Source: Octopus sinensis
Lineage: Eukaryota
Assembly: GCF_006345805.1 (NCBI RefSeq)
Contig: NC_043016.1
Location: forward strand, 19,902,001 to 19,966,000
Direction of reading: 5' to 3'
DNA: 64,000 nt
Part shown: positions 1-58,988 of the stretch, one piece after another
How the letters are laid out: each line of letters begins with the position of its first letter
How positions within the stretch are numbered: the first letter of the stretch is position 1
Notes under the pieces: model-generated
What the model was told of the DNA's origin: nothing
The model's database searches: none
The model's input: only the letters and a program-made list of their open reading frames with translations
Program-made: the position numbers and the translations under genes

Positions 1-2267
1 CCAACAGTTGCCTGTGCAAGAAAGATTCCTCTCTCCATGCCACTGATGATGTTTGAGGAAGAGGTAAAGCTAATACAGCGCTAGACACCAAAGTGTGATC
101 ATAGATGTTGCAAACAGAATGCCAAGAGCTAAAACAGTTACTACAAGACATCTCATCCAACTCTAACAATTCTATCAATTTACCACACTAGATTGGTATC
201 TTAAATCTCTATCCTGAATGATGAAAGGCAAAGTTGACCTCAGCAAGAACTGAACTCAGAGTACAGGAGTTGGAACATATATTACGAGGAACTCAATCTG
301 ATACTTTAACAACTCTACCAAAGACGAGGTTAAAAGTCGGTAAAAATTACAGTGATCATATTACAAGTATCTGAAAACTAAGTGCAATAGTTTGAAGCTT
401 AGAGCATCACAAGTGTTAATTAATGTTTCTAAATATTAATTAAACAATTAATCCATGCAATAGTAAAGGTAAAAATGACATGCCAACATTGATGTCCATG
501 CAATTAGATTAAGTGATTGGGGAGCAAGCTCTGAGGTGTGAATCAGTCGGAATGTTGGAGTGGAATGTGCAGTGAAATGGTTATTAAAAGAAAACAAAAA
601 GTATTAGTAACTCATTAATTTACTTTAAAAATATATATATTTAAAATATTAATTGTTTCCTCAAATGTGATGTACACAATTAATATGAACTAACAATATA
701 TTTTTTTTTTCATAAAAAAAGGGGAAATTTTATGAAAATGTAAATGGTAATAAAATAAGAATTAATTGAAATTTATAAACAAAAAAATTATGTTATGATG
801 AGTCAATATTTCAGATAATTATTTTATAAAAATTTGCCATGGAATTTATTAACTGATTTTATTTGGAAAACATCCAGTAATCTATATATCAAAAGTAACT
901 GATTTGTTTAATATCAGTAACTGGTATCTGAAATTATACATAATACTGAATTCCTTCTTTAACTTTCCAATCATTACATACTCAGTTCTACACTTACCAA
1001 TTCCACAGCCAAAGATTACATGAGATGTTTCACTTTAGAATTCAGCTCCAACCAGAATACTGAAGTCAAATATTTATCAGACCAGTATATGAAGGAGAGA
1101 GTATACATTTTGATACTTTGCCAGAAGCTCTAGTTATAAATCTCTTAAAATCATGTTGAAACGATACAGCAATCCTTCTAATAAGATCTAAAAGGAAAGC
1201 ATACTTTTGCTCTATGATAATGAGGTGGGGGGGAGCATCAGAGAAGCAGCTTCCTTGAGAGGCATAGGGGCAAGTTTGGTGGATCTTTCATAATAAAAAT
1301 TTAGGATAATCTTGAGGTTATAGGGCCTTACTTCGATTGAGAGTAAACATGATAAATTTTATTCTATTGTAATACAATATGCAAGGGAAAAGATTTTGGG
1401 GGTGGGATATAAATTCATAAGAATATTAAACTCTTTTAATTAAGGAATATTTAAAACTAACCCATCTAAGATTACCTCTTTATTCTGCCATACAAAATTT
1501 GTCCATTTTAAAATATATCGAAATTACTTCTTTCCATTATCATTCTATGACAGAATCTTTTGTCAGATTATATTCCAAACATTCAAGCAATGACTAATTT
1601 TAATTAAATCCTTTTAATTAATGAATACATTAAACAAATTGAAACATTTAGATTTTGTAGCTCATTAAAAAAGTGTTTTTAGCACCAGAGTTGTTTAAAT
1701 AATGGCTACTAAAGAGTCTAAAAGAAAATAATTATAATTCTTTTTAGCAAAGACTTAAACTAAATGCTTACACCTTTATCTTTGTAAGTGATTTCGGGAA
1801 ACAGGAAAAAGTGTTTAAGTGAGATGGTGGAGGTGTAACTGAAAATATTTAAGAAATCTCCCAAAACCATTTTTACAACATATTTATTGACCACATACAG
1901 GTTTCTTCATAAAAATATGAGTTTTCTTTTTTTTTTTTTGTTATTTCTAGCAAAATTAATGACTATGTAGAGGCTAATCCAGGTTTATAGAAACTTTTGA
2001 CATCATATGAGTCAATAAATAAAATGAAATTTCAACCTTTCTTTGCAATCAGACCCCTCCCCACATCCGTTACTTTTTCTCTCCATCTTCATTGTGCACA
2101 TTGAACTCATTTGAAATGCAAAAAAAAAAAAAAAAAAAAACGAAATGAAATAAAAAAAAATTAAAACAAATGAAAAAAAATTACATGAAATAACAACAAA
2201 CATCCAATACTGAGGACTAGTATATAACAATTTACTAGTATGCAATAATCTCGACTACAAAACTTAC

Positions 2268-2306
2268 CTGCACTTGACATGTATTTTGTATTGGCGGAGA
2301 AGTAGT
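2268..2306 (-). other. Candidate 39-nt exon, host gene unassigned (possibly a beta-adaptin cassette exon)
   Basis: Acceptor tttcttcttgtcttcag| and donor CAG|GTAAGT; 156-nt AG-free pyrimidine tract upstream; 13 codons with no stop in phase 0 (TTSPPIQNTCQVQ). Confidence 0.5.
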
Positions 2307-5300
2307 CTGAAGACAAGAAGAAAGCCGATGACAATTGTGAAGAGTACAGAAAGGTAAATAAAGTAGCAGGCGAGGGGGGAAAGAATTTGGTCAGATTAGG
2401 AGAAAGGAAAGAATGTAAGAAATGGATAGGAGGATAGAAACATTGGGTAAGTATACAAAGTTGTCTCAAGACGAATCGTGTGTTGTCAGCCTTGGTGTAA
2501 CTGTGTCATTCAGGCTGTGTCATTTCAAGAAGACACAGCAGAACAGTTTCCAGCTATTCTTACAAACAAGTTATATTTAATAGCGCCAAGGAAGCTGATG
2601 CTCTCTGTTGACATTTGATAACTTAAACAGCATTTTAATAATATATTTAATTTTTCTTTTCTTTTTTTCATTAAATAATGAATTATAGTGTTTAATCTTT
2701 TTGATAGCAACTCATCTGAAATAGTCTCTGGTTCTACAATTCATACTTCCTGTTTAAAAGTGATCTAAATTAAAACTTTTCATCAAAATTTCATGTTGAT
2801 TTAAGTTTTTAACATCAGATTAATAATGACAAACTTATTTTACAAAATTCCTTGTTATTTTCAAAATTGACTATGATAAAGTTACTGTATTTTATCAAAA
2901 ATATAGTAATGAAATGATTAAGATAAAACTTTGAAAGTACATTTAAAGATAAATTAATTACACTTTATTATATTGACTGTTTGCAGATAATACTACAAAC
3001 AAACAAAAAAGAAAGAAAAAAATCCAATGAAAATAGATATATATATATATAACCACCATCACCACTACCACCACCACAAGCATCAGTTAATTTCTTAAAT
3101 GAGCAACAATAGATAAAATTATATATATAAAAAAGGTAACAATCGGAATAAAACAGAGCAGCAGTTTGCAATTTAACAAATGCCAGCCCACCAAAAATGA
3201 CGAAAAGGAAGACTAAATTTTTTTTTCCTCGACTCCACACCATCTTCATTAATGAGAAGATAAAACAAGAGTTTACATCCCTATAATTAATCTTTCTATG
3301 CCATGCTGTCAGACAGATTTTAAAAGTTATAAAAAAATTTTAAAAACTATTTTTTAATTTTATCAAACATGGCAATTCTGTCTACTTCTTTTTCAGTCTA
3401 CACAGCCCAAAGTTCCATTATAGAATATTTCAGAATAATTACTGTCACTCCTCTGACTATATACTTAGATGTAGTTTTGACTGCTAGTAAGACCAAATGT
3501 TAAACAGAAATTGAGTATACTCAACACTTCTAGCAATACATAAGTGTAAATATATATATATATATATATATATATAGTAAGATATTCTATGTGGCACAGG
3601 TTATGTCTCTCATCATCATTGTTGTTGTTTAATGTCCATTTTTCCATGAATGGGCCTGGTGGAATTTATCTAAGCAGGTTTTCTATGACCAGATGCCATT
3701 TCTGTTGCCAAACCTCATCTGTTTCCAAGCAAGCTAATAATAACTGTTTCCAAGCGAGCTAACCCCATAGCTAAACATGTTTTTCATGGAAGAATGAAAA
3801 TGAACATCACTAGTATGATGGTGATGCTCACTTTCAATCACATGACACCTAGACAGGGTACACAGAAGCACATGTACATAGATACACAGATGATATATCT
3901 TCACAAAACTAAACTTAACTTACAAAGGATTATACAAAGATAAATAAATATAATAAAAATTAACCTAATTTCAGTTTGCAATTTTTAAACTTTTTTCTCG
4001 TGTTTTGATAACTGGACACCAATATATGTGAATACAATTTGACTGCTTTTTAAGCTGATATTTTTTATCAATTTGTTGGTGGGGAATGAACGCATTAAAA
4101 AAAAAACGAAGATAAAAGCACCAAAATCGTAAAACTTTTAGCAGAAATCACTGGTATTCAAAAGAAATGAATAACAGGCCTCTTTAGTTTCTGTTGACCA
4201 AATCTACACATAAGGCTTTGGTCAGCCTGGGGGCTACAGTACAAGACAACAGTCTAAGGTGCCACACAGTGGGACTGAAACCATAGTTGGGAAGTAAGCT
4301 TCTCAACCAAACAGCACATCTGCACCTATCTAATTAGTTTTTTTTTGTTTTTTTTTATGAGCAGTGTATTTTATTGCAGCTAATGAAGCAAATTAATAAG
4401 CTTATACTCAGATTTAATATTTGCAGCAATTAAAGAAATCTCTTATACACTTAAGAGTGTCTAAGGCTGAGAAAAGGACAAGATGAAGCTTTGGGGTTAC
4501 TGTTGTTTTGTAGCCTGAAGTGAATTGATCAAGCAAACATATGGTACACAGGTAGTTGGCTGAACAGATCTGTAGCTTCAGTTATGTCTCTGCCTTACTG
4601 AGGGTCAAACAGTATGCTGTGATTTCATCACAGCATACTGTAATAAGATTGTTTGAATATGTTACACTGCTTCATCTGTTTTTGCATGTTAAATTGCTCA
4701 GAAAGCACATCTACAATCAAAAAGGTATCCCAGCAGTGACCATCCAATCTTTTCATCACACAGTGCATCCAGAACCACATTATCTACATGCCCTTTTCTA
4801 AGGCAGCAGGCTATAGTTTTGAGAGAGATCTGGCTGCTATTTCTTGCAGATCGACTGACAACATAGAAATATTCTCATAGCCAGGGTTAGGTCAGACTAG
4901 GATGACTTGGTCAGAGTGTGACATTTGTTGTTCCTCAACCTACTGGAAATAGAACTAAAAATCTGTTTCAAATTACACCTACAGTCCTAAAAAAAATAGA
5001 AGGGCAGTCACAATAGTACTTGAAAACAAGACTAAATGGTCTCATCTGGAGAAACTTTGACCAATGGTCTACTCAATGACTGAACAACAACTACTACTAA
5101 AAGCAGCTATAATTGAGATGCATTTCACCAGCACAAAGAAACTCAGTTTCCTACTAGCTTTGGCAGTCCTCTGTTTTACATACACACAACACTTATGAAT
5201 TTCAATAATGTAAATAATTTTGTGTTTTGTCAAGAAGTTTTTACCATAACCACCTTCACATCCCCATACAAAAAAAAAATTTAATCTAGTTCTCAGCATT

Positions 5301-5559
5301 AGATGGACATGTCACATCACTCAATAACTTTTTTAGGACACAGTAGCAGTGCCACCACCAATAGCAGTCTTTCTTTTTTTTTTTTGAACCGGTCTTCTCT
5401 GGCACAGTGCTTTTGTAAGTTTTTGCACTTAGGGTTAGGAAAAAGGTGGAGGCTGCTGGTAAAGATGTATCTTTCATGACCAGGAGGAAGAAACACTCTC
5501 TGTCATCAGATGTGTTCAAGAGGACCAATTTTTCCCAATAGTTTCAGATTATTATCAAG

Positions 5560-5910
5560 AAGTCAAGCCAACCAATGTGGCACATTGCTGTACAGCTCAA
5601 GATAGCAGTCCATTATCATCTGAGCAACATATGAGGTCAAGTGGTACAATTCCTATATGATGAGGAAAGGTCATATGTCCAACAAAGCTCAGAAGAACAG
5701 TATGACTATGTTACTACCAAGATCTCCTGATTTGAACTGCTGGACTGTCTGTAGTGTCTGCATCCTGACTGAGTGAGGAAGAAGACTGGCTAATATACTA
5801 ATGATGTGATGGATTTACTGGAGGAGGCAGCCAGCATGGGCAGAGATCATCTGATCTTGGCATGAAGTTGCTTTAGCCTCCACACAGGGGCTGATTGTGG
5901 CTTTGTTCAA
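5560..5910 (+). mobile_element. Highly decayed Tc1/mariner remnant
   Basis: ccaagatctcctgatttgaac (PRSPDLN) at 5717-5737; otherwise heavily frameshifted. Confidence 0.4.
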
Positions 5911-6039
5911 TGGTTCATTTCTTTTATACATCAAGTTGAATAGGTCTTACTTTACTGGGAATGTTTTTATTTTACTTATTTTTTTTTTTTGCTTGATGTC
6001 AGTCCATATATTATTTTGTTTTCAAATAACTGCCATTCC

Positions 6040-6044
6040 ATATA

Positions 6045-6099
<55 letters not shown>

Positions 6100-6205
6100 A
6101 TATATATGGCGGTGCCCCAGCATGGCCACAGCTCATTAGCTGAAACTGGAAAAATCAAAATCAAAATCATATATATAATATATATATATATATTATATAT
6201 ATATA

Positions 6206-6240
<35 letters not shown>
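6040..6240. repeat. (TA)n microsatellites (representative; many more TA, CA/TG, GAT and TC tracts throughout)
   Basis: Direct reading; others include 21520-21570, 21712-21757, 21895-21939, 42235-42350, 46215-46265, 48466-48502, 58700-58785. Confidence 0.95.
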
Positions 6241-7212
6241 TTTAATGCATTTGATGTTGAAATGGTTTGGACAGTTCAACAGGATCTGATAGGCACAAGG
6301 ACTGCAATGTGCTCCACTGTCTGCTTCCTAGTGCCAACCACTTCACATTTTACAGCATGTAGTGGGTGCTTTTTTTGTGCCACAAGCTTAGTGAGGCCAT
6401 CATGCAGCTTGCAGGACTACAATTCAGGAAGAACATTTTATGCTAGGATATGTAGAGGAAAAAGAAGGATAAAAGTATGATAGCAGAGCAAGTATATCAT
6501 ATGCATTTAAATTATCATCATCTTCATTGCTTTTATATCTGTTTTCATGCTGGTTGTGAGTTTGATAAAACTTCTTGAGACAAGTCTCTATGGCTGGGTG
6601 TTCTTTATGATACCAATCGTTTTACTTGGTTCCAATGTAAATATTTTATTTCACTCATCTTTCACACATTGAATTACAGTGCATTAGGGCAATACTGCAT
6701 GTGCATGCATGCATGTATATCAAGACGTGTGTACCCAATTTTGCATGTCTTTGTGTGAGATCTGTATGATATATGCATATTACATATTTATTTGGGTACT
6801 ATTGAGTGTATATATATATATATGTATGTGTATATAAATATATGTACACACTCACACACGATATGTATCTGAGCATGTATAAACGCCTATGGTATCTCTA
6901 CAGATGATATATCTACACAAAATTAAACTTAAAAGATTATACAAAGATAAATAAAATTAAAGTCAAACTAATTTCAGTTTGGAATTTTTAATTTTTTTCA
7001 CGTTTTGATAACTGAACACTAATATATATGAATATAATTTGATTGCTTTTTAAGCTGATATTTTCCCCCAATTTGTTGGGGGGAAAAAACTAAAAAGAAA
7101 GAAGAAATGAAGACAAAAGCACCAAAATCATAATACTATTAGCAGAAATCACTGGCATTCTAGAGAAAAGAATTTTTAAATATTCATGACATATCCTCAT
7201 TTTTAGAGAATA

Positions 7213-7249
<37 letters not shown>

Positions 7250-7519
7250 CACACACACACAACCAGTCTCTATTTTCTCAGAGAGGAAAATACTTAGAAA
7301 TGGAAATGTAAAATAAATTTTTGAAAACAAATACTGGGAAAAAAAAAAATTGCAGTACATGCTCTTGTGTGAGAATATAACAAAACGAGAACATTGATTT
7401 AAATTTTCAACATAAAACATAAGCATATTGATTGACTTTGAAGTCAATATATGCTAGAACAGATCAAGATGCTTTGCTATTAATTTGTTGATGAACATGA
7501 TTTACATGAGAAAAAACAA

Positions 7520-7730
7520 AAAAGGGGTAGGAAGAGGAGTACAAAATAAGAGGGGGAAGAAGAGAGGAGGAAGAGAGGGCAGAAGAAAGGGGTAGGAAAA
7601 GGGAGGTGGAAGGGGGAAAGAAGAGGGGAGGAAGAGAGGGCAGAAGAAAGGGGTTGGAAAAGGGAGACGGAAGGGGAGAAAGAAGAGGGAGGAAGAAAGG
7701 GGAGGGAAAGGGAAGGAAGAAGGGAGAACA
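7520..7730. repeat. Polypurine (GA-rich) tract with an internal ~59-bp duplication
   Basis: aggaagagagggcagaagaaagggg occurs twice; the + strand is almost free of pyrimidines. Confidence 0.85.
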
Positions 7731-9432
7731 AAATAGAGTACAGTTAAAGTTTTAGACGACACTTCTTTTCTGCCATTAATTATATTCTTTGTTTTATGCT
7801 TAAATCAGGGAAAGATGATTATGAAGAAATTTTATTTTTCTGGATTGTTCCAACAATCCCCCACCCCCCACCATCGCTTCACTTGTTTTAAACAGTTCAG
7901 CAACAGGGGTTGATGAGCTAGAGGACTGCACCATGCTCCAGTCTGTTTTGGCATGGTTTTCACAGCTGGATGCCCTTCCTAATGCCAACCACTTTACAGT
8001 GTTCACTGTGTGGGGGGAGGGTGATTTTTCATACATAGCACCAGCATTATACTGTGGTTGCCAAGTAACTTGCAAGGTAACACCCTCAACTGATACAGGG
8101 GGGAGAAGTACTGAGAAAGATGGCCTTATGCCAGGTGAAACGCTAACCGTTTTGATACCAACCTGCCAGAGACTGCCCTTGATTTTATAACAGAAACTCT
8201 ATGCTTGAAAGTGATCTCAGTTTAAGCTTTCTATGAAAATTCAGTGTTAATTTATGTTCCAGACAACAACTTAATGACAAGATTAATAAATTCTTCGTTA
8301 TTTTCAGAATTAATTTGATGTAAAGCAGTGTCTTTCAATAGAAATATGGTACAAAGGGGTTAAAGTATGATAGGGGAACAGGAAACGGTGTCTTGCTCTA
8401 AGGGAGACATATGGTACTCCAGCTGGAAGAAAAGGAGGATGGTTAAAATTCCTTACTTGGCATTTTAATTATATTTTCACTGATGCCAATAACAAAAAAC
8501 AGGTTATCGAGGAAGCCCTTATGGGTGACATTCTAGAATGTATTTTCAAAGGACTACTGAAGTCTTGATTTAAAATACTGACTCTTTAGCTGACAAGCAC
8601 ACATACTTGTGTATTTTATGTATTTCACTATTTTAGCTCTACTTTAGAGCATTGAGCACTTAGTATTTATTACATAAAGGATACAACATATTGCCCAGTC
8701 CAGGAATTGAACCAAGAAGTTTATGATCATAAGACTAACACCACAACCACTAAGCTATGTAAAAACTCAGCCATATTAATTTAAAAATGAAAGCACTTTT
8801 GGTCTATGAAGATTTACAGTGCCTTTGATGTAAAGATAAAGTTTCTTTCATTAGATATACAAGTTGAGTTAATTTAATTTTTTTCATTTCAAAAAATTTT
8901 TTTTTTATTTTACAAAACTATTTTACCCAAGTTTAGTTAACAGAACTTTATCCCAATATTCAATCCTTCAGATCTGTGCTCTTATTTACCTTAATCATAA
9001 TCATTTAATATCCCCTTTTCTATGCTGACAAGAACAGGTAAGCCAGAGGGCCCTGCCAGGTATATCACATCTGTTTTGGCCTGATTTCTACAGCTGGATG
9101 CCCTTCCTAACACCAACCACTTTACAGAGTGTATTGGGTGCTTTTTACATGGTACCAGTACTGCTGATGTCACAAAGTACTTGCAAGACAAGACTCCTCA
9201 TCAGAGTAGGGTATAGCGTTGAGGGATAAGAAACCAAGACAAAGGGAGACAGGAGCAGGTGTCTTGCTGAAGGTGAATACATGGCTATCATCATCAAACA
9301 TCCGTTTTCCATTTGGTATGGGCTGGATGGTTTGATAGGGGCTGGCAAGCCTGAAGTCTGCACCAGGCTTCACTGTCTGTTTTGGCAGGATTTTTATAGC
9401 TGGATGCCCCTCCCAACACCAACCAAACCACT

Positions 9433-9471
<39 letters not shown>

Positions 9472-10969
9472 CTATAATTGTTCAGTGAAAGCAAGAACTT
9501 TAATTTTTCCATGAAATAAATGTTTCAGGTTTACAGGCAAACATTTCTTGAACAACAGAGTAATAAAAGCAAGCAAACAAGAGAAAGTTTAGTAACAATA
9601 TTATTATAATTTAAGTGCAACACAATAAATAATTCTATGAACTTTATGATAGCCACAAAATTAGAAATCACGGACAGATACATCTTTTCTGTCACAGATT
9701 ACATTTTCCTTTCATCTTTTACTTGATTCAGTCATTGAACTGCAGCAATGCAGGGGTACTGCCTTTGTAGGGCTTTAGTAGAACAAACTGACCCCAGTAT
9801 TAACTTTTGTTTTTACTCAAAGTTTGATGCTCATTGTCTCAGTCTCTTTTGCCAAACTGCTAAGTCAGTCGCTCACTCACTCACTCACTCGCTCGCTCAC
9901 TCTTTCAATGGGCTTCTACATGATTTCTGTCAACTAAATTCCTTCACAAGGCAATGATCAGCCTGGCAATATAGTAGAAGACATTTGCCCATGATGCAAG
10001 ACTAAACCTGAAACACACAGTCATGCCTGTGCCTATTTATTAAACAAAATTAACATAGTAGTAGATGAATATAAAATGCAACAAAGAACAAGTTATAAAA
10101 AGTGTTACCAAATAACTATAAGTAGAAACTGGTGTGGCAGACATTCTTAACACAGTGGTTTCCCTCGTTTCTCTGAAATCATTGATTTTTATCTTCATAT
10201 GCTTAAAATATGTGACTTTTTTTGCACCATAAAAGAAAGCTCCAAAGTAATTCTAACTATTGTCATGTTTCCCTAGGGAAACATGACACCCTGAAGGAAA
10301 ACCACTGTATTAGAGCAATATTTACCCCTTGATAATGAAACAAAATTTGTAAGTTTACTTAGAAAAAGATTAAAATAGCTTTATGCTTTTTTTTTTTAAT
10401 TATTTTAATGGTTTTTCTGGTTTGGAGTAAAAGAATTCATTATAAAACATAAAGCTTTTGAATAATTTGAAATAACTGAAAATAGATGCCAAATAAATAT
10501 ATTTTGAAAACCATCAGTTTTAGAAATTTGTAGTTTTATCAAAAACAAAAAAAAAATGAAAACTGAAGTATTAGAGTATTAGGGAAATATTCAAGTTAAT
10601 TAAATATTAGGAGAAAAATAAAGTTAAGTGAAAGACCAGTTAGAATTTAACTTGCATATTTAATAATGTTAAAAAGATTAGTTAGTGCTCATGCTATAAA
10701 TGAACAGAAAAGTGATAACATTTTTAAATAGTTTTCTTTTTTTTAATTTAAAATTGTAAGGAATAACCTAGTAGTGTTTGGCAATACCAATATAGAAATA
10801 GATATTGATAAAATTAAGTTTTAGCTGAGATTAATTTGAGAGAAGGAAAAAAAAAACCATACCATACAATTTTAAAGTATTTGTTCAGAAAGCAAAGAAA
10901 AAGAACATCAAAGTTAAAATGAAAAACCAGGCGTAATTGTAATAACCAATAACTTTTGCATTTACTCAC

Positions 10970-11124
10970 AGTGAAACTAGGATTTCCAGGCTGTATTTTA
11001 AGCTCTGCCAATACCCAGATGCCATTGGTCAGTTTGAGTGATTGATACAACATATCTTGTCCTTCGACATTCCTCTTGGCAATAGTGAAAATATTGTTGT
11101 TTCTAAGTTTTTGGGAAACCATAT
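10970..11124 (-). CDS. AP1B1/AP2B1: beta-adaptin coding exon 20 (155 nt)
   Basis: tttgtag|AT ATG GTT...TTC ACT|gtgagt; [52 protein letters not shown]. Confidence 0.96.
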
Positions 11125-14100
11125 CTACAAAACAGCAATTAGTTGTAAATTGTTAAAATGCATAATAAATTAATACAGAAAAAAATAACTCGCAACATCT
11201 ATGGGTGAGATTATAATAAGACAGTAATTGACTTAAACTACTCTTGAGTATAATAACTGCATCCCTCTGCCAAGCAATGTTGAGCCAGTGTAGAAGAGTA
11301 GGCTCATCAAACCAGTCTGACCTCTTGGTGGAGAGAACATGCTGAGGCCTTCATCCTGTGGTGGACCAAACATAGGCAATCCAATCCAAGAATGAATTAA
11401 CTAAACATGAATGCTTTATGAAAGAGACATGCAGGCAGTTTGGTATTGAGAGAGCTAAGATGGTGTCTTTCATCTTTTACTTGTTTTGTCATAAGACTGT
11501 GGTTATGCTGAGAATCTGCCTTGAAGAGTTTTAATCAAACAAATCCACCACAGTACATTTTCTTTTTTTGATGTCTGGCCACCATCTATCTATCTCTTCT
11601 TTTACTTGACCATCCCATTATATTCTGATCCCCGTTACTTGTGAGTATGTCCAGCACTTCACCACCAACTCTCTCCTGCTTTCTCTCATACTATAGCTGT
11701 CTCCCACTCTCTCTCTCTCTCCTCCTGTTCTTCCCTCAGGCTGGGGTAACCTTGTACCTCCTCTACAGCAAGACACCTATTTCTGTCTCTCTGTCTTACC
11801 ATAACCTTTTATCATCCGACACAAGATCACCTCCTCCAATGTCCCTTCACCTCCCAAAGGATCCTTGTCTTGCAAGTTACTTGGTGACCCTGTCAGTGCA
11901 GGTACCACTTAAAAGGCTCCCAGTCCACAGTGTAAAGTGGTTGGCATTTGGAAAAAGCACTCACTCCATTTTACTGGGTGGTTGGTATCAGGAAGGGCAT
12001 CCAACCATAAAAACTATGCCAAAACAGACACACAAGTCTGGTGCAGGCTCCTATCAAACCATCCAGCCCATGCCAGCATGGAAGGCGGAACATTAAATAA
12101 TGATGATTATGGTACTTATTCTATCAATCTCATTTTCTGAACTGCTAGATACAGGGGCATAAACAAACCAAACGTTAAGGAATGGTTGTGTTGGTGGGGG
12201 AACAAATACAAACACGACTGGCTTCCAAACAATTTTCACCAACCTAATTCACTCATAAATCATTGATTGGCCTGAAACAATAATAGAAAATAACCTGCCC
12301 AAGGTTCTGTGCAGTGGGACTGAACCTGAAACCATGAGGTTGCAAAGCAAGCTTTTTAACCACACCTACAAGGTAACATTTAGTAGTACCATGGATACTG
12401 ATGGCACTTACCAGCATTGAGTTGTACATCATTTATGGTATGCTGCACTTCATTTTGAGCTGGAATGTCTTTCCATGTGGCTAAGAATACTCTTTTGTCC
12501 ATTTCACCGTCTTCAACAAAGTAGATATGCATTGGAACTATGCAACTGAAGTAAAACACATCAATGTTATTTTTAATGGCAACCTGAAACAAGAAAAGAA
12601 GAAAAATTATTTTTTAGCATGCTGAAAATTAAAAAACAATATATCATTTAAATATAGATATACCTTGTGTATCATCATCATCATTGTTTAACATCCGTTT
12701 TCCATGCTAGCATGGGTTGGACGGTTCGACCGAGATCTGGGAAGCCAGAAGGCTGCACCGGGCTCCAGTCTGATCTGGCAGTGTTTCTACAGCTGGATGC
12801 CCTTTCTAATGCCAACCTCTCCGTGAGTGTAGTGGGTGCTTTTTACATGCCAGGCGAGGCTGGCAATGGCCATGATCGGATTGGTGCTTTTTACGTGCCA
12901 CCGGCACAGAAGCCTGTCAAGGCGGCACTGGCATCAGCCACGTTCGGATGGTGCTTTTTACATGCCACCGGCACAGTGGATCACATACAAATAGATTTAC
13001 ACCTGCTACTGTCGAGTATAGAGCTCCATGTAAATTATCATCATCCAATCTGCTGCCAGTTCAGTGGTTTGGTTACTATTATACTTAATAGTATTGCGAG
13101 TTATGTGAGGACACATTGCCTAGTGGTTAGTGTTACACCCATGATTGTTAGATCATGGTTTCAATTCTTGACCAAATGGTGCAAAACGCTTCATCTTGCG
13201 TTGCTCTGCAATTACTCTGACACCTAATGCATTGTACACCGTGCTCCCATTCAGGCAATGTGGATTCGATGAAGGGAGAGAGAGCCAATGAGCAGCACTA
13301 ACATTTGATCACTATAAACACAAATCATTTGTGCTGGTCGTTTAACAAAAGCAAATGCTCATACATCATCTTTGATGAAAGAATCCATCATCATTACTAG
13401 TTATGATAAACACAAGTTTAATCCATACGTTCCCATATATTTCATCACTGTGGTTGTTTGGAACTTCTGCATTGGATGTTCCAAGTGCAACTAGATACTG
13501 AACTACAACAGAACAGGGAACACTAATATATAATATACAATTCTTGAATCATTTCAAACAATTTATTATTCAACCTTCTTGGTTTGAGGGGAGGGGGACA
13601 TATTTCTTTAGAAATTCATTGTCTATTATTTTAAAAAGTGATTAAAATACATCAAAAATTTGAATGAGTTTAACGAAAATAATTTTCCCATTATTACTAA
13701 AATGTTTGGAACATAGTTTAACAAAACATTATGTAATTTTTATGTATAAAGGCTGTGCTCCAGCATCGCCACAGTCAAATGACTGAAACAAGTAAAAAAA
13801 GTAAGTACCTGTAAATTAGTTAGGGGATCCATTTTCAAAACTGGTCCAACAGTATTAAGTGGTAGAGATGTGAATGCTGTTTGGTTAGGGTTCAGGGGAC
13901 CTTGTAATTGTAGAGACTGTGCTGGCTGCAGACCAAAGCTTTAAACCAAAAGAGTTTGAAAACAAGAGTTAAACAAGTAATATAAAATTAGGGGACAAAA
14001 GTCTTTTTTAAAAGAAAGAAAAGGCAACCCACAGAACATAACATGCTCAACATCACACCCTTCCTGACAACAGATTACAAAAAAAAAAAAAAACTTGAAA

Positions 14101-16807
14101 TTGAAAAATTTATGAAACTATAAATAAAAACAAATAGCATGCTGTATAAATTCAGATCCAGTATTAGTTTTGTAAAGTGGCTTAAGTGTCTGAGAAAAGG
14201 TAAGGAAGCATTCATACTGAAAGAAATTCAGGATGAATCAGTGCCTTGTCTTAAAGGTGATTCTTTGTAAAATTTCATTTATAGTTTCCCCTAAATTTTA
14301 ATAATTCTACTTTTGAAGTTTATATTCAATCAATTTTCACTGTGTTTCTAACATTTGGTTTATCAACAGAAATTCAGTTTTGGGGTGTTTTCTTTCCTCA
14401 TTGTTTGATTAATAACAAACTCATCATTCTAATATACAAAGACTTTGTAATAATGCTTTCAGTAGGATAGTTCTAGATTACAGAAATTGTTTTTGCATTA
14501 GACAACTTTTAATTAAAATGAAAACCAATGCTTCTTGGCAAATGGACTTGCCTTACACTCTCAAAATATCTAATTCATTTCATATAGTGCATTTCATAAG
14601 CAAGGCTATTGTAGAAAGTAAGTTTTTGAAAATATAAGCAAATCAGATGTTTTACAGTAACCTGCCAATGACTGTTCTACTGTCATACCTATTTTCGAAT
14701 CTTACATTAAAATGAAAAAATTATTATTAAATTCATATTAATACATAGTTGGATAAGCAATGTGTTACCAATCTCACATTTAAGTATTATCATCATAGAT
14801 TAGTTTTATTTTGATATGTGAAAATTATTTGAATTCAAAAATGTGTACTTTATATTTGATGGTAAAAATATATAAACTTTTCACCCAATAAAAAGTTTTT
14901 TCTCTTTAAGTAGAAGCTTTAATACCTGTTTTTATTGAATTGAATTGCAAATCCACCCATTGCTTGCATGGCTTTGTTGGTGAGTGTTATTTCCATCATT
15001 ATTTGACCATTCTTTCGTGTAAATGTTCCACTAACTTCAAGACCTTTTCCTTTTATAGCTGGAACCCAAACCTAAAAACATGTATTAAATTCTTTCAACT
15101 GTAGAACAAAAGACATAAGAACATAGAACAAACATTTCTCTTTTAAATGTTTGTCCTTTGTTCTTATTGAAATTTCATACAATGGACCCATCTCAACTGC
15201 TACCAGAAAACATTTGGCTTTTTTCATTTTGAACAATAACCTGAAATATGCAACAAATATTTCTTCACCCACCATTCATTCAACTTCTCTGCTCACTATT
15301 CCTGAGAGAGTCATAGAGGTAGAATCGTCTGCCACCCGAGAAGCAAATGCCATTACACTTTCTGGCTGGATTGATAAACCGAGACAGGATATTAGCCAAC
15401 CGTCTCATTCTTGGTCTACCTCTAGGTCAGCTGCCTGCTGCTCAATTTCAAGGTTCTGTCTTGTGATTCTTTCCCGCAACCTTCAAATCACATGTTCATA
15501 GTATTGGAATTGTGACCTCTCAATGCAGAGAAGTAGCAATTCAACCTGGAGAGACTCCCTGGTCTCTGAGTTATGCATCCTGTCAAGTAACGTTACTCCA
15601 GAGATCCTTCCGAGAAACCTTCATTTTGGCTGCTTGTATCCATGATTCTACTCTTTCGGTCATTCTTCACATTCATCAAAAACAAAGAATATCACATGAA
15701 CTGCAATGAATAAAGCATAATTGCTATTCAATTAATTGTTAATATGGATAGTCCACTCCACTCTGCAGGAAACATAGGACTGGTTTCTGGATTTCTTTGG
15801 CATACATATACTCCCCCTGGATAGGATGCCAGTCCATCACAGGATTACTGAATGGACTGCAGCAACGTGAAAGAACACAATGCATTGTCCAGTCCAGGAA
15901 GTGAAACCACAATTTTATGATCATAAGTCCAGCACCCTAACCACTAAGCCATGAACTTCCACAATCATTAATAGAAAATATAATTGAAAAGTTACCTCCT
16001 GAGGTGGTACATAAAACTGGGTGGCTGGCAATCCAAATATATCTCCAAGACCACCTAAAGCATCACCACTACTGACACCGGTTCCTAACTGTGAAAAGAA
16101 AAAGAAAAGAAAAAGGTTGTTAATTCAAATTTTCTGTTCTTTTATTTTCATATTCTACAGATTCAAAGCAAAAATCTTTGAAACCCTACTTGACAATCAT
16201 CATCATCGTTTAACGTCCGCTTTCCATGCTAGCATGGTACAAACATTTATTGCCTCTTGAGCAAGTTACACAATTCACCTTTTCTCAGGATGATTGACAA
16301 TAGATTTTACTCCTACATTTTATTCCTGATATCATTAATAATCAATGACGGTTCAAATACAGCCTTTTTGTTATGAAGAAAACAGCAAAATTAGAAACTT
16401 GAATGAGATTTAACTAGTACTTAGGAACAGGTGTGGCTGTGATAAGAAGCTAACTTTCCAACCACCGGTCTCAAGTTCAATCCCACTTTAACCAAGTTTC
16501 TTCTTATAGCTGGGCCAACAAAAACCTTGTGAGTGGATTTGGTAGATAAAAACTGGAGAAGTTTACCAAGTATATCATCATCATGTATATCATGTGTGTG
16601 TGTGTGACTATCGCTTTGCCCAAGTGTTTTAGAAGAATGTCACTAATGCAAGCAGTGTCCTTCATTTCCAGTCTTCCATGAAATCCTGTTTGGTCATGGG
16701 GGAAATAGATGAGGGTTGATGATAGGAAGAGTATCTGGCTGTGGAAAATCTGCCTTGACAAATTCTGTCCAACCCACGGAAGCATGAAAAAAAATGGGCA
16801 TTACACT

Positions 16808-16839
<32 letters not shown>

Positions 16840-19800
16840 GGTATACATTTGAACGTTATTGCATGCAAATAATTACAAACATCTTGCCCCCAGATCCCAC
16901 GCAAATTACTACACCCAGTTCTTACTTCTCAGAATATTGGCCCTTTGTAAATCCCTCCTTGTTCATGCTTTTTTCTGCGGCCATTGACTGGAGCTGCTCA
17001 ATCTCACAGTTATTGAGGGCCTGCAAAGGCCTTCGGCATGGTGGTTTTCTCCAGATCAAAACAATATATGTCTGATGGTTACTAGCAGAATTATTGACAC
17101 TGGGTGGCTGGCAATTATACAAACCACTCTGCAAAGTGGTTGGGGCAAGGAAGAGCATCTGGCTGCAAAACTCGTGCCAAAGCAGACAGTGAAGCTTGGC
17201 ACAGTCCCCAAGCAGCTTACCAGCTCCTAACAAACTGTCCAACCCATGCAAGCATGGAAGCCAGATGTTAAATGATGGTGACGACACAATCACACATGAA
17301 AAGGGATCGTGTCATGCAGAAACTTGATGACTTCACCAGTGCTGGTGCTACATGAAAAAAGGACTCAATACACTTTGTGAAGTGCTTAGCATTAGGAAAA
17401 GCATCCTGCCATAAAAATCATGCCAAAGTAAACACTGGAGCTCCTCTGGCTCATCAGTTTCTGTTGAACCATTCAACCCATACCAGCATGGAATAAAGGA
17501 CATGAAATAACTTATTTTTCTTTTGCTATGTGGTAGTGCGTTCAGTAGGACTGAACCTGTCATCACAGGGTTGCGCAGTGAATTTCTTAACCATACAGCC
17601 ATGCACATTATCGGTTGTGAAAATACTTGCTCCGATATCATGAATGACTGAAATTTTGTTTTTTTAATAAAAACCTTACTTACTTAAATGTAACATGAAA
17701 AAGAAAACAAAAAAATTAAAACATTTTTTAAACTTTTTTTTTAATAGATAATTTCTTTCAAATTATCGTTTTTGCATAAAAATAATACTCACTAGTGTAT
17801 CAAGTCCATCACCTAGGATATCCATTCCACCACCAGCAGTTGGAATTTGTTGAGTGGAATACATTTGTTGTTGCTGTTGTTGATGCATAGGTGGAGCAAG
17901 GTCCATGTCTAACAAATCACCAATGAGGGAATCAACTCCTGGAATTACTGTAGGTTGAGTACTATTTTGATCAGCTGACACTGTCTGGTTAGTTTGGTTA
18001 GCTTCTTCAACCAAGCTGCCACTAAATGTCAAAATAGAATTTTGAAAAAAACATTTAAATTTATTGCATTTTTCTCAAAAAAATAAAGTATATTATAATT
18101 TTCTTAAAAAATAATACAGTAATCAACTTCCATTTTGTTTTTTTTTAGTAATGTTCACATTAATGCTATATCCATTTAATATAAAGTAAATCATTTATGG
18201 AGATCTCGGATCCCACAAGCAGCAGTGAAGACAAACCATCAAAAGGAGCAGTAATTTTGAATAGGAACTGGTCCGGGAGAAAGGGGTCACTTTAATTCAA
18301 TCACAAGCAACATCTCTACAGCCTGTGGTAAATAAAACTTACTCATTCTATGCTATAAAATGTTTGGTTTTAAGGAGAGCATCCATGTGTGAAAACAATA
18401 CCTCAATATATAACACACTCGATAATAAAGACTAGCAATCTTCTCTGTAGTTGTTAGTGTCTCATGATGAAGGAGCTTCACAATGGACAGACAGTGTAAG
18501 ATCCATCAGTTCAACCCATACCAGTATGACAAAAAAAATGGCATAAAATGATGACTACTGTAATTTCAGAGTAGATGTAATCACTCAACATGCTAGAAGA
18601 TGCAAGAAATCTCCTTCACATGCACCCTACCATTTTCAAAATGGAAGGACACAAGCAGTCAAGGATGCATGCAGCCCACCAAAAAAAGGCAGGATGGTCA
18701 TGGGTAAAACAGTTTTGACTGCATATATATGACCAATATCTGCTCGACCTGAAGCTAAACAACGAACCAATCTTTCTTTTATGAAATAACCAAAAACAAT
18801 TATGAAAACAAAAAAAAAAGCCAAAAATAATCCTGAAAATTTAAAATAACAGACAGGAAGCAAAACTAGAAAGTAAAAGAAAAATTAAACTTAAACCAGG
18901 AGAAACAAAATCAGAGAAAACATATAGAATATTATTCCATCAATACATCTAACATTTTATCTAGATTGTTATGCTAATTAGTATAATGGACAAACAGAAA
19001 TTAAGTCAATGATGAAGACAGAATTGGCAGAATTTAGATAAAGTATTTTGTGGTGTTAACTAAAACATTTTTTATGTTCTCATATCAAATCCAAATTACA
19101 TCAACTTTGCCTGTCATTCTTCAAGGGTTGGTAGAAGTATGAGTCAAAGTAATGCATGTGTGTGTGTGTGGAGGGGTTCGATTTAATTGATGACACTATC
19201 ACCACAAAAAAAGATTAAGAAAACGAAGTATAGTTTAACACATCTGCTACTCTACCAATTTTGCCCTGGCCCCACTATCCCACAGTATTTCGTTAGATCT
19301 ATCTGTTTCAAGTTCAAACTTAAAATTCACAATTCTTCTTCCTGGGACCTTGCACCACACACCAGATTTGCATCCTAGTGCTAATGTTATGTCAAACGGT
19401 AGAGTACAAGTCTAGATAGAAATTTCCTTCAGTGAAATAATGGAATGTTTCTCTCACATGTGGGACAGTGATAATGTTACACAGACATCTGAAATAAATA
19501 AAGAAATGGGGTGGGGGGAGGGCACCATTTCACTAGTTGATCTGAAGTCACTCGCTAACAGTCTTCCATTCTCAGATGTACTGTCTGTTCACTGCCATCA
19601 GCTACAGCAATTACAGTGGCTTCTGCTTCTCAGAGCTGAATGATCTTGGTACCACCTACAGTCAGATACAGCCTTAACTGACACATCCCTCCTCTTGCCA
19701 TCTATGCTGTGTCAAGTTTTTCCACAAAACCCACTGGAATTCCTGCCATGTATATATTTTTTTTTTGGCAACTTGTAGTTGTCCTAGAATAATGGATCAC

Positions 19801-21522
19801 ATTAATCTCACAAGTCTTGGCAGACCTATGTAGCTTATGGACGCAGCATCTTCTTTCAGATCAAACAATAGGGAAAAAAATATAAAATGGAAGTACCCTA
19901 AGATGTGTGCTTTCACTTGGGTAATGTGACTTTGAAGAGGGAAGAGAGAGAGAAAGAGGGAGAGAGAAGACAGTAGAAAGGCCAGAATGGTGTGGGTGAA
20001 AGGAGCAACAAGTATGATGGTCGAGACGGAGTTGTTGGGGTGAAGATGAGATAGGAGCGATCAACAATAGCAGAGGTGGAAAAAGGCAAGAGTAGATGAT
20101 GGGTGAAAGAGAAATGGCTCAGGGAAGAAAGAAAGTGATGGCTGGCAGTACAGATATGGTGATGTTAGAGAGTACTAGTGACAAATGGTTCAATGCGGTC
20201 TCTTATTCATAGATCTAGTGAAGGGTGACATGTGCAGCATGATGATGATAATGGTGATGATAAGTGGGTGGAGTTTAGGGATTGAATGTGGATAGGCTTG
20301 TATTGCAAATGTGCCTATATCTGTATTAAATTTTTGTGCTTTTATGTCTTGTAACTTAACAGCTTGGCAACTAGAAACTGATATGGTGGTGCACCTAACA
20401 TGGATGCAGTCCAATGACTCTCTCTCTTTTACTCTTTTACTTGTTTCAGTCATTTGACTGCGGCCATGCTGGAGCACCGCCTTTAGTCAAGCAAATCGAC
20501 CCCGGGACTTATTCTTTGTAAGCCCAGTACTTATTCTATCGGTCTCTTTTGCCGAACCGCTAAGTTACGGGGACGTAAACACACCAGCATTGGTTGTCAA
20601 GCAATGCTAGGGGGACAAACACAGACACACAAACATACACGCACATACATATATATACGACGGGCTTCTTTCAGTTTCCGTCTACCAAATCCACTCACAA
20701 GGCTTTGGTCGGCCCGAGGCTATAGTAGAAGACACTTGCCCAAGGTGCCACGCAGTGGGACTGAACCCGGAACCATGTGGTTGGTAAACAAGCTACTTAC
20801 CACACAGCCACTGAAACCATTAAATGAATAGAAGGAATGTATGAAAAGAAAAAAACAAAAACAAATAGAACATGTGAACTTACGATGTAGAACGAGGTGG
20901 TAGAGCCTTTCGTGTACTTGAACGGCCTTCAACAAATGCATTTGGAGGTTTGTGGTAAACTGAAGCGAGACTGGCAATATGACAGATGAGTTCATCAAGA
21001 AGAGTTGGTTCTATAAGGTCCGTTTCCTCAGAGATTAAGGGTTTCTCAGCCAATACTACATCTTTTGCAGCAGCTGGGTCAGTTGAAAGGAGACGCCAAT
21101 AAATGTAGCCACGATCTCTCAAATCAGGATTATCACTATCCTTTAAGTAATAAACAAAATAAGGATTCAAACATTTGCAGAACAAAGCAGAAGGATATGT
21201 AAGCCTAAAACAATGCAATTCTCTGAAATGAACCCTTACTTTATTAAAATTATCAATAAGAAAATATTTTTCAATTAGGAACAAATTGATAATAGAATAC
21301 TGCAGACACATCCCTTACTGGCTTCAGCCGTTAACTACAACCATACTGAAGCACTGCCTTAAATGGCTTACTTAAACAAATCAACCCTAGTACTATATTC
21401 TTTTTCTTAAACCACTACTTATCCTATTGGTCTCTTTTGCTGAACCACTAATTTACAGGGATGCAAACAAACCAGCACCAGTTGTAAAGTGGTGATGTGG
21501 GACAAACATAAACATACATACG

Positions 21523-21573
<51 letters not shown>

Positions 21574-21709
21574 CAGGCTTTTTTTTCACCCACAACACTT
21601 TATTTGGTCCACGGTGATAGTAGAAGACACTTGCCCAAGGTATCACATAATAGTATTGAACCTGGGATTATGCGGTTGGGAAACAAACTTCTTACCACAC
21701 AGTCACGCT

Positions 21710-21758
<49 letters not shown>

Positions 21759-21890
21759 CACATTCATAGAATCTGTAACTAATTATGCTGCTGTTCAGGG
21801 AACATCTTTTACATCTACTTCAGTAAAAGATATATATATATATATATACATACATACACTCACACATGCAAACACACACATATATATACA

Positions 21891-21941
<51 letters not shown>

Positions 21942-24043
21942 CAAGCCTCTTTGGTAGTTTCTTCCATCTACCAGATTCCACTTACAAAATCACTGGTTAA
22001 TGTGATGTCTGAGGTACCACGTTGTGAGGTTGAACCTAGTACTATGTGGTTACAAAGCAAAATTTGTTAAGCCAGTCCTGAATTATATTTGTGGGCAAGT
22101 GGGAATAATATTGGTACAACATCAGTCAAAATACCTTGTGGTATTTATTTATGTCGTTTTTACAAATTCCACTGGGATCAGTTCTGTCCTTCATAGCTCC
22201 ACAGTTATGGAAGTATATACCAAATACACCAGTGTCAATTCTATTTACTCTACCTTCCTATACATGAATGGCTTTGTAAGAAATTGATATTTAGATAGCA
22301 TAAAACATGTAAAATCACAGATTTAAATTAGGGAATAAACTGAATGTATAATAAGAAATATTGTCGTAGTTGTTTGGCTTTCTAAAATTTGTTTAAATGG
22401 TGCCTTTCAAGCAATCTCATCTCTGTATAAAGTTGGGACAGTAGAGGCATAAACATGAAGTTAAGAAAATTTGCATCACTGTTGTGGGGTTTTGAGTTTT
22501 AAGCTTACAGAACAGCAACTTGGGTAGATGTCTTCTACAAGAGCTTTGAGCTTACCAATACCTGACAAGGTATTGATAGATGGTAGGTAGACTTGATCTG
22601 TTGCCTGGCTTAACACTAAAAACTTTATCCTTGGGTAGCCTTTAATAGAGATTATTCTAATACAAGCAATTTAGCCCACTCTTCCCTTTCTCCCACCCAT
22701 CTTATAGGCCCTGAAAGGGTCTTTCGGTACTACCCTTATTTCTCTGACATAACCATGAAAAATATTTTAGTATTAATTGTGTAACAAGTTCACTAAATAT
22801 TTTACATATAACTTCCAGATTTCTTTGAGACAAAAAAGGAGTTTAAAAAAAAATTCAAATACATATCATAAACATAAGTTTCTAATTTCAAACAACATTA
22901 GAAATTATAAGCTAAAACCATTTTACATCTTGTATTTGACTAAGTTTATAATTCTAAAACAAAGAACAGACCAAATGTGTTTGCAAATTCTTTTCTCTTT
23001 ACCTGAGTGGCCAAACTCAAAACTTGCTGAACTAGTTCTTGTGTGTCGGTGGGGCGTTTCAAAAACAGTTTCACAATAGCGGTTAACAACTGCAATTGGA
23101 CCTGCATGAAGAAACAAAGAAGTAAAAACAAAACAAAATAAAATGAGTGTCAATGTCATAGGAAGCAGTGTCATTTATTTCCAATATTCTTTGAAAACAT
23201 GTTTGGCAATGGGAGAAAATATTACCTTGCTGGGAAACAGAACAGGATTGACAACAGGAAGGGCATCCATTAAAATAATGATCATGATCACATATTTGTC
23301 CAAGAGAAGGATGGTTGATTCCATTAAATAATGTGTGTGTGTGTGTGTAAATGTATGGGTATATTTATATATGCATATACATATGTATGTATAAATATAT
23401 GTTATGTATGGAGATATATATGGGTATGTATGTTTATCAAGTAATATCGTATGTATGGAGAATGTATTGTGTCTATACAAATGTATTTATAGACATAGAT
23501 AAGCTCTCGTTTATTTATTTAATGAATGTATTGTGTATATATAATTATTTAACTAATAATTAGTTTATTTGATCAATTGTAGACCTAAATGTATATAAAT
23601 ATATGGATATGTATGTGTTTGTATATATTGATTTATATGTTGATGTATAAATATATTTGTATGTGTGTGTGTGTGTATATATATGTGTGTGTGTGTGTGT
23701 GTATCGTCAACATTTAACGTCCGTTTTCCATGCTAGCATGGGTTGGATGGTTTGACCGGGGTCTGGGTAGCCAGGAGGCTACACCAGGCTCCAATCTGAT
23801 CTGGCAGTGTTTCTACAGCTGGATGCTCTTCCTAACGCCAACCACTCCGTGAGTGTAGTAGACCTGCTGGAAAAAAAAGACAAACACAAACACATAGAGA
23901 CATAAACATGTTCTCTCTCTCTCTCTCTCTCTCCTTCTCAATCGTAAAGGATACAATCCAAAACTTCCAGTTCTGTTTGGTTCGATTCTCAACATAATCT
24001 TGAAACAAGATCCTCAAATTGGTTTTAGGGTAGCTCACCCGAT

Positions 24044-24081
<38 letters not shown>

Positions 24082-24677
24082 ACATGTGATTGAATTTTTA
24101 TATGCTTTATTAAATTTTGTAGATAAATATTCATGTATTAACTTACACTTGTATTGCTTATTATAAGAATTCTTTGTTTACGATTAATATTTGAAAGTTA
24201 ATTTAAGGATATACATAGTAATTACGGGAGATTAACACGGTATGTTTACTTAATCATTCGGTCTTCTATATACTAACCGTAACTGAGACGTAGAAATTCA
24301 AATTTGTTAACCAATTAGATAAAACTTATGATTAAAAATAATCACTCCCTAACCCCCAATAGTTTTAAAACTCTAAAATATTAATATATAACATATAACA
24401 TGGCCCTTATAGCTAATCTATTATATCTTAACAACTGTTTTCTTGTTATGAAATATTCTGTAAAAATATTCTGTGAAATCATATTAATTAGATGGAAAAA
24501 CATATACATATACGTATAATTTCACTGTGAGGAAAAGAAAAAAAAATCCTCATATAGATATTGGTGTATATTTGTATGTATGTATATATATGTACATGTT
24601 GCTTCTATTTGTTGCCAATACACATGGACTTATGTGTATGAAGAAGATCAATATTGTAACAACCCTGGTCTAACTGT

Positions 24678-24714
<37 letters not shown>

Positions 24715-42249: not shown

Positions 42250-42300
<51 letters not shown>

Positions 42301-43362: not shown

Positions 43363-43387
43363 CTTGATGTTATTGGTCACACGGTAC
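43363..43387 (-). other. AP1B1/AP2B1: 5'UTR part of the ATG-containing exon
   Basis: Acceptor tcttatattgcag| at 43388-43389, 25 nt upstream of the ATG, preceded by a pyrimidine tract. Confidence 0.75.
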
Positions 43388-51780: not shown

Positions 51781-51844
51781 ACTTTACATTTAGACTACAA
51801 AATTGATTGTAATAGGTTAGCTTAGTGCCTGAGTATTTTAATGC

Positions 51845-58793: not shown

Positions 58794-58988
58794 TCCCAAT
58801 TTATATTCGTGTTTGTTATTTTATAATAATTACTGATATCCTTATATATTACTATATTTATAGCTTATATGTTATATGTATGTATATTATTGTAATTATC
58901 AGTTCAGTTTAGTAAATAAAGAAGTTAACATAATATAATGTCTAAAAGTTGATGAACTATCTATTGATCCTCTCCATTTTCTTATTGC

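Follow-up and report, generated by a model that had tools for sequence, protein, structure and literature searches.

The minus strand near the start of a 64,000-nucleotide (nt) stretch of Octopus sinensis DNA (contig NC_043016.1; hereafter the window) carries a 39-nt unit that looks like an exon and lies beyond the last recognizable exon of a beta-adaptin gene. The locus therefore raises the question of whether this unit belongs to the adaptin gene, whether it is used alternatively, and what its inclusion would do to the protein. An original prediction had proposed a regulated cassette exon at the junction where vertebrate AP1B1 has a microexon. We found that positions 2306..2268 very probably represent a genuine, conserved and alternatively spliced cassette exon of beta1/2-adaptin, located in the last intron and spliced between ...QPGNPSFT and LSLKARAM....

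The unit has the coordinates and splice sites that had been predicted for it. Read from the minus strand by script, 2306..2268 is ACTACTTCTCCGCCAATACAAAATACATGTCAAGTGCAG (from ACT ACT TCT to CAA GTG CAG), a 39-nt sequence in phase 0-0 that encodes the 13 residues TTSPPIQNTCQVQ. The exon is preceded by ...ggctttcttcttgtcttcAG, with the acceptor at 2308-2307, and the donor GTAAGT (2267-2262) forms, with the last three exon bases, the full U1 consensus CAG/GTAAGT. This perfect donor belongs to the cassette alone among the 21 exons of the gene, and it is conserved in O. bimaculoides and Argonauta. The insertion point, T907/L908 of the skipped octopus isoform, corresponds to T913/L914 in human beta2 numbering. 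The cephalopod versions of 39, 36 and 33 nt are all phase 0-0, so that the isoforms with and without the exon both keep the reading frame and are productive.

The host of the exon is the beta1/2-adaptin (AP1B1/AP2B1) gene, as indicated by its domains, its identity to orthologues and its fold. A tblastn search with human AP2B1 (the numbering of which matched the residues named in PMC1540706) located the gene at 43362 to 10970 of the minus strand. The junction-resolved model of coding exons 1-20 (10970..43362) encodes 907 residues up to GNPSFT. All of them (907/907) are identical to O. sinensis XP_029648499.1 ("AP-1 complex subunit beta-1") and to O. vulgaris CAI9734700.1, and one mismatch separates the model from O. 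bimaculoides. The Pfam families PF01602, PF02883 and PF09066 (Adaptin_N, Alpha_adaptinC2 and B2-adapt-app_C) are listed for the matches. In the spliced gene model, constitutive exon 20 (10970..11124) ends in phase 0 at 10970 with ...GNPSFT, and the predicted phase fit with the cassette holds. The introns between coding exons 1-20 range from 118 to 4,009 nt; the intron upstream of the cassette (2307..10969) measures 8,663 nt, the longest in the gene, and the downstream intron has 7,239 nt, of which the first 2,267 fall in the window (1..2267).

When the window was searched with C-terminal peptides from human, fly and cephalopods, no terminal exon turned up, because it is located about 4.97 kb beyond the window start. 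Its place was given by an O. sinensis locus (L004; GCA_006345805.1, CM016878.1) that shares 4,500 nt with the window at 100% identity. On this locus exon 20 ends at 42971, the cassette lies at 51635-51673, and the terminal coding exon (LSLKARAMEVYQGMQLAYETILHN, then stop) follows at 58913-58984, 7,239 nt past the cassette. A terminal beta-adaptin exon between 2310 and 10969 would have spoken against a cassette; that interval was checked and holds none.

In transcripts and gene models alike the exon directly follows GNPxFT and runs on into LSLK, which bears out the predicted cassette. A protein search with the appendage and the hypothetical insert recovered P0001, which derives from a 2,049-nt spliced transcript contig (L001, Logan ERR12945499, cuttlefish-type) and reads ...GNPAFT-TTSPIQNSCQVQ-LSLKARAMDVYPGMQQAYETILHN. 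Its 36-nt insert differs from the window exon by a single-codon deletion, with about 80% identity, and was placed by tblastn at exactly 2306..2262 (E=1.5e-6). In a further 16 transcript contigs, homologues of 36 or 33 nt sit at precisely the junctions that had been predicted, spliced between GNPxFT and LSLK. Contig L001 also has a single C>T change (CAA>TAA) at about 900-930 that creates an in-frame stop in the hinge (TTATN*NASQ); other Sepia-type contigs all have CAA there, and the stop probably reflects an error of sequencing or assembly, or else a rare allele.

Alternative use, which had also been predicted, is seen in isoforms annotated with and without the exon in three Octopus species. 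In O. sinensis, TTSPPIQNTCQVQ is present in XP_036367565.1 (X1) and XP_029648499.1 (X2) and absent from XP_036367566.1 (X3). O. bimaculoides has it in XP_014773111.1 and XP_014773113.1 and lacks it in XP_014773112.1 and UniProt A0A0L8HDQ5, while in O. vulgaris it is included in CAI9734700.1 and skipped in CAI9734701.1. These isoform pairs are annotation models, made by NCBI for O. sinensis and O. bimaculoides and in a separate submission for O. vulgaris. Moreover, Argonauta hians GAB1604573.1 contains TTTPPIQNTCQVQ, and the included form was assembled from Sepia esculenta whole larvae (SRR23936182; PMC10442824). The sole full-length Logan-assembled octopod transcript that we recovered (SRR3401912, an "octopus" metatranscriptome; PMC11662614) is the skipped form. 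We conclude that this is a real exon, that octopods at least use it alternatively, and that public annotation already contains it.

Genomic orthologues of the exon lie in O. bimaculoides (L003, 60615-60653) and A. hians (L002, 29606-29644, flanked by AG and GT). O. sinensis and O. bimaculoides do not differ in the exon; between Octopus and Argonauta there are three synonymous changes and one conservative replacement (S>T) with no indel, and between Octopus and the Sepia-type sequence five synonymous changes, one conservative replacement (T>S) and one deleted codon. A third lineage carries the 33-nt version. All versions have lengths divisible by three and share an invariant core, SP(P)IQN[ST]CQVQ, which includes the S-P dipeptide and the single Cys found in every cephalopod version.

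The flanking introns measure 1.6 kb (upstream, 1,589 nt) and 1.4 kb in Argonauta as against 8.7 and 7.2 kb in Octopus, and blastn could align the introns of the two genera only over the exon, about 57 nt upstream and 41 nt downstream. Flank identity between Octopus and Argonauta was measured by global alignment of positions -63..-4 and +7..+51. Upstream it was 0.71 for the cassette versus 0.55 +/- 0.03 (maximum 0.64) for the gene's 20 constitutive exons, and downstream 0.72 versus 0.51 +/- 0.05 (maximum 0.60). The conserved upstream block (-1 to about -70), with the acceptor AG and the polypyrimidine tract, occupies 2307..2376, and the downstream intronic block (+7 to about +45), tttgtagtcgagattattgcatactagtaaattg, occupies 2223..2261, both on the minus strand. 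In the orthologous intron the exon, its splice sites, the AG-free tract and the CTRAY branch-point candidate are retained between Octopus and Argonauta. These alignments indicate that the exon peptide and the flanking intron sequences are under constraint. Given its presence in Octopus, in Argonauta and in two decapodiform-type lineages (Sepia being one), the exon is probably as old as the coleoid cephalopods.

Inserts at the same junction are not confined to cephalopods. Among about 175 collected beta1/2-adaptin C-termini, 150 have the eight-residue turn QPGNPxxT. At the GNPxxT/LSLK junction, cephalopods have 11 to 13 additional residues; vertebrate-type AP1B1 (P0010, P0093) has DLE (GNPSFT-DLE-LSLK); isoform X1 of Littorina saxatilis (XP_070205475.1), compared with X2, has 12 residues (VNNTTPVCDTLH) encoded by a 36-nt exon (L021, 28838-28873); Mytilus species (P0155, P0273-P0278) have six (FVN[LV]LT); and isoform X2 of the crayfish Cherax quadricarinatus (P0237) has 21. 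Each of the cephalopod, Littorina and Cherax inserts contains a single Cys. Mytilus also has two alternative terminal exons, LSLKxRxMDVY... and VSLRSGTPDIFPEIFQILDTILHN.

The 9-nt DLE microexon that the original prediction named for vertebrate AP1B1 does exist at the equivalent junction, as evidenced by the GNPSFT-DLE-LSLK proteins and by the AP1B1 locus of the sturgeon Acipenser oxyrinchus. There, exactly one AG/GATTTGGAG/GT unit lies in the homologous 4,232-nt intron (L022, 8884-8892), with a chance expectation of about 1.5e-3; the unit is unannotated, and the annotated sturgeon AP1B1 protein is without DLE. Human AP1B1 has isoforms with and without residues 923-925 (numbering of UniProt Q10567). 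Like the octopus exon, the vertebrate microexon is in frame, lies in the same intron at the same phase-0 junction and enters the same platform hairpin. However, DLE has three residues versus 11-13 in cephalopods, with no sequence similarity, and it sits in an AP-1-specific paralogue, whereas the octopus gene was the only close beta1/2 match in the search. The sturgeon exon also has UGCAUG (TGCATG) about 35 nt upstream of its acceptor and, unlike the octopus exon, no long CU tract. A literature search on AP1B1 microexon or appendage splicing and on octopus microexons returned nothing specific, and it did not confirm neural use of the vertebrate DLE exon.

The Littorina cassette is a counterpart in form, being likewise a separate mini-exon of phase 0-0 in the same intron and at the same junction. 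Unlike the octopus exon, it has an AG-free zone of only 16 nt, a GT-rich upstream region, no nucleotide similarity and an unconvincing protein similarity, and for these reasons it is probably of independent origin. Homology of the cephalopod and Littorina inserts was considered and set aside, since nucleotide similarity is lacking and the splice-site context differs. More generally, independent origins are the simplest reading of the sequences from the separate lineages, because the inserts share no convincing similarity and most other metazoans have no insert. The convergence that had been suggested as a possibility is consistent with this.

Where does the insert sit in the protein? An AlphaFold2 model of the hinge and appendage of P0001, insert included, was built from a 90-sequence alignment. 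Its mean predicted local distance difference test score (pLDDT) was 83.8, with values above 90 throughout the appendage, and it superposed on the beta2 appendage (1E42) with a template modelling score of 0.97 and a root-mean-square deviation of 1.1 A. In P0001 numbering the insert comprises residues 284-295, and the strand W268-Q276 carries E272, which is human E902. The loop 277-291 (PGNPAFT-TTSPIQNS) is of low confidence (mean pLDDT about 51 for 281-290), and the prediction adds CQVQ (292-295) to the last strand (292-300), before the C-terminal helix. In this model the insert lies in the last beta-hairpin loop of the platform subdomain, a surface loop that becomes longer, which agrees with the predicted insertion into the platform.

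In beta2 the top site of the appendage consists of R834, F837, L838, W841, E849, I876, R879, V881, Y888 and E902 (Schmid et al. 2006, PMC1540706). There, E849 and E902 bind the arginine of the DxxFxxFxxxR helix, and Y888V reduces clathrin binding (PMC1540706). All of these residues except R834 (R834K) are conserved in octopus, and the insert (T913/L914) lies 11 residues after E902. Judging from the model, the 11-13 residues would enlarge the last beta-hairpin turn of the platform subdomain, next to the strand with E902, and in this way the insert may tune the top site's interactions with clathrin and accessory proteins or add to them.

Alternatively, the insert might act as an independent module and not as a modulator of the top site, for example as a proline-directed phosphorylation site (TTSPP) or through a reactive or lipidated Cys. 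The invariance of S-P and of the single Cys in cephalopods is in line with this, the Littorina and Cherax inserts also contain Cys, and the loop is predicted to be flexible. Nevertheless, these are short and common motifs, and beyond them the inserts of different lineages have no sequence similarity. We regard an independent module as rather unlikely.

Among the acceptors of the gene, that of the cassette stands out. The 156-nt zone without AG at 2309-2464 was confirmed by script, the preceding AG being 2466-2465. This CU-rich tract (2464..2309, minus strand; T69 C50 A27 G10) is 76% pyrimidine. At the remaining 19 acceptors of the gene such zones span 18-85 nt, so that the cassette zone is about twice the longest of these, and the orthologous tracts measure 165 nt in O. 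bimaculoides and 122 nt in Argonauta hians. Pyrimidines make up 74% of the 160 nt upstream of the cassette versus 46-64% for constitutive exons, and positions -160..-1 contain 17 CU-rich tetramers versus a constitutive mean of 5.4 and a maximum of 9. Across the three octopods the upstream region is 71-78% pyrimidine with 16-18 CU tetramers. Dense UCUU/CUCU motifs lie upstream of the cassette, a sequence feature also found at PTB-repressed exons.

The branch-point-like cctaatctgac, originally put at about 90 nt from the acceptor, was located at 2400-2390 on the minus strand. It contains two candidates that match the consensus, cCTAAT (A at 2396, -90) and CTGAC (A at 2391, -85), and these are the only CTRAY matches in the Octopus AG-free zone. 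At the aligned position O. bimaculoides has CTGAC (-99) and A. hians has TACTAAC (-102). Inclusion of the exon is probably controlled via the long CU-rich AG-free tract; a likely mechanism, as far as the sequence can suggest one, would combine a bound PTB-type repressor with a distant branch point, about -85 to -100.

Exons with such an architecture are known elsewhere. Gooding and colleagues reportedly described, in Genome Biology in 2006, long AG-exclusion zones with distant branch points and PTB repression, with alpha-tropomyosin and alpha-actinin as examples. The octopus exon resembles these in its zone of more than 100 nt, its long CU tract, a best branch-point consensus toward the upstream edge, and its alternative use. 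It differs from them in also having a conserved proximal branch-point candidate, and in that the absence of AG fits its composition.

A comparison can also be drawn with the conserved neuronal microexon program that Irimia and colleagues (in 2014) and Li and colleagues (in 2015) are said to have described. Like neuronal microexons, the octopus exon is very short, preserves the frame, and has strong splice sites and highly conserved flanking introns, and it encodes a surface loop adjoining an interaction surface of a vesicle-trafficking protein. Microexons are defined as exons of at most 27 nt in the strict sense and at most 51 nt in the broad sense; the octopod exon (39 nt) and the decapodiform-type exons (36 and 33 nt) are over the first limit and within the second. 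Unlike neuronal microexons, no UGC motif is evident immediately upstream of the octopus acceptor, and the included form occurs in transcripts of whole cuttlefish larvae.

Several observations weigh against a regulated, functional cassette as proposed here. Firstly, this AT-rich window holds 6-7 stretches of at least 150 nt without AG on each strand. AG was absent from 14% of mononucleotide shuffles of the 156-nt zone, which has only 10 G and 27 A, and the full set of shuffle results was 14%, 16% and 24%. The exclusion of AG is therefore probably in large part a by-product of pyrimidine richness. We dropped AG exclusion as a standalone signal on account of this base composition and kept the comparison with acceptors of the same gene and the conservation across species. 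Secondly, a proximal branch-point candidate, TTCAC (A at 2338, -32), is also conserved (-32 to -35). Since this motif is conserved alongside the distant CTRAY, sequence alone fits either position, and a distant branch point is not required, because the absence of AG fits composition and the proximal motif is retained. In addition, there is no Rbfox motif GCAUG within 120 nt downstream of the cassette in any of the three octopods. On the protein side, the insert has low model confidence and no alignment depth, and any effect on ligand binding is pure inference. Finally, every recovered cuttlefish-type sequence with a C-terminus includes the exon, which suggests that it is possibly constitutive in decapodiforms.

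This last point leads to the reading in which the exon is effectively constitutive in coleoids, with the skipped isoforms as minor splicing noise taken up by annotation pipelines and the insert as a lineage-specific insertion without any regulated switch. In the cuttlefish-type cluster (94% identical), all eight members that reach the C-terminus (8/8), across more than 80 transcript contigs, have TTSPIQNSCQVQ or TSPIQNSCQVQ, and these inserts stem from many RNA-seq assemblies; the splice sites, too, are very strong. However, skipped isoforms are present in three separately annotated Octopus genomes and in UniProt, the only full-length Logan-assembled octopod transcript recovered is skipped, and two features seen here, flanking introns far better conserved than at constitutive exons and a long AG-free CU tract, typically go with regulated exons. 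A constitutive exon is thus quite unlikely, and we retain the alternatively spliced cassette.

It is very unlikely that a chance pair of splice sites or a nonfunctional exonized piece of intron, a neutral and recent pseudo-exon, was mistaken for an exon. Such an origin could be argued from the AG-free runs, which are not rare in the window, and from the fit of AG absence with composition. Yet the unit lies outside repeats, is present in assembled mRNAs, and has been kept in Octopus and Argonauta and in two decapodiform-type lineages, its substitutions being mostly synonymous and its indels leaving the frame intact. The further reading that the original prediction had left open, an exon or first exon of another minus-strand gene (phase 1, or a start at ATG TCA AGT), has theoretical open frames in its favor and can practically be discarded, as transcripts link the unit on both sides to beta-adaptin exons in phase 0 and no match supports another gene.

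The exon as a feature is not new, because RefSeq and GenBank isoforms of O. sinensis already encode it, although the original prediction had presented it as unannotated. In the literature we found no paper on its conservation across coleoids, on its unusual regulatory anatomy, or on the unrelated insertions that other lineages have at this junction. That several phyla carry unrelated inserts at a single junction is the side result of greatest interest here. A broader and tentative possibility is that the last beta1/2-adaptin intron is a bilaterian-wide hotspot, in which at least five lineages (coleoid cephalopods, Littorina, Mytilus, Cherax and vertebrate AP1B1) carry unrelated alternative mini-exons that lengthen the same hairpin beside the top-site glutamate; the coleoid exon would then be an ancient one, dating from the ancestor of octopods and decapodiforms, regulated by its CU tract and distant branch point, and possibly a neural switch that retunes the binding of accessory proteins or clathrin to the appendage. 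Invertebrates are generally described as having one beta1/2-adaptin for both AP-1 and AP-2. Where a single beta1/2-adaptin serves both complexes, an alternative insert next to the top site would be one of the few ways to obtain distinct adaptors. If the inserts change ligand binding, they would represent convergent, splicing-based tuning of an endocytic hub.

Some other features of the locus were recorded. Interspersed repeats lie in the minus-strand intron at about 4174-4315, 3886-4172 and 2690-2921, the nearest ending about 380 nt upstream of the cassette, and they have multiple copies, of either orientation, at other places in the loci of O. sinensis, O. bimaculoides and Argonauta. A repeat-derived exon was considered and rejected, as blastn matches of the exon region were orthologues only and the interspersed repeats are several hundred nt away. 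An Rfam scan of the window gave 0 matches. At the other end of the gene, upstream of the start MTDSKYF (43363-43387, minus strand), the in-frame sequence YRVTNNIK follows an acceptor (ttgcag/G), which accounts for the N-terminal extensions that alternative 5' exons supply to some RefSeq isoforms. In O. sinensis the extension is MFMMYRVTNNIK, and in models of O. bimaculoides and O. vulgaris it has 76-95 residues; such extensions probably either result from faulty annotation or reflect in-frame starts further upstream.

Upstream of the gene, a plus-strand open reading frame of 468 residues at 59005-60411 has reverse-transcriptase motifs (FGFVPGKSTTDAIF ... YADD) and is a fragment of a retrotransposon without long terminal repeats; within an intron, a plus-strand frame of 179 residues at 32901-33440 resembles the C-terminal part of such an element. 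Also upstream of the gene, 51825-52307 is a long tandem repeat with a 24-nt period, satellite-like and of low complexity, with several open frames (PFVSLC.../MGTDSR...). Among the coding exons, the hinge exon at 17793-18021 is the most divergent between Octopus and the Sepia-type sequences (L001 and L005), with 65% identity versus more than 90% elsewhere, and its poly-Q run varies in length (QQQQQQ versus QQQAQ).

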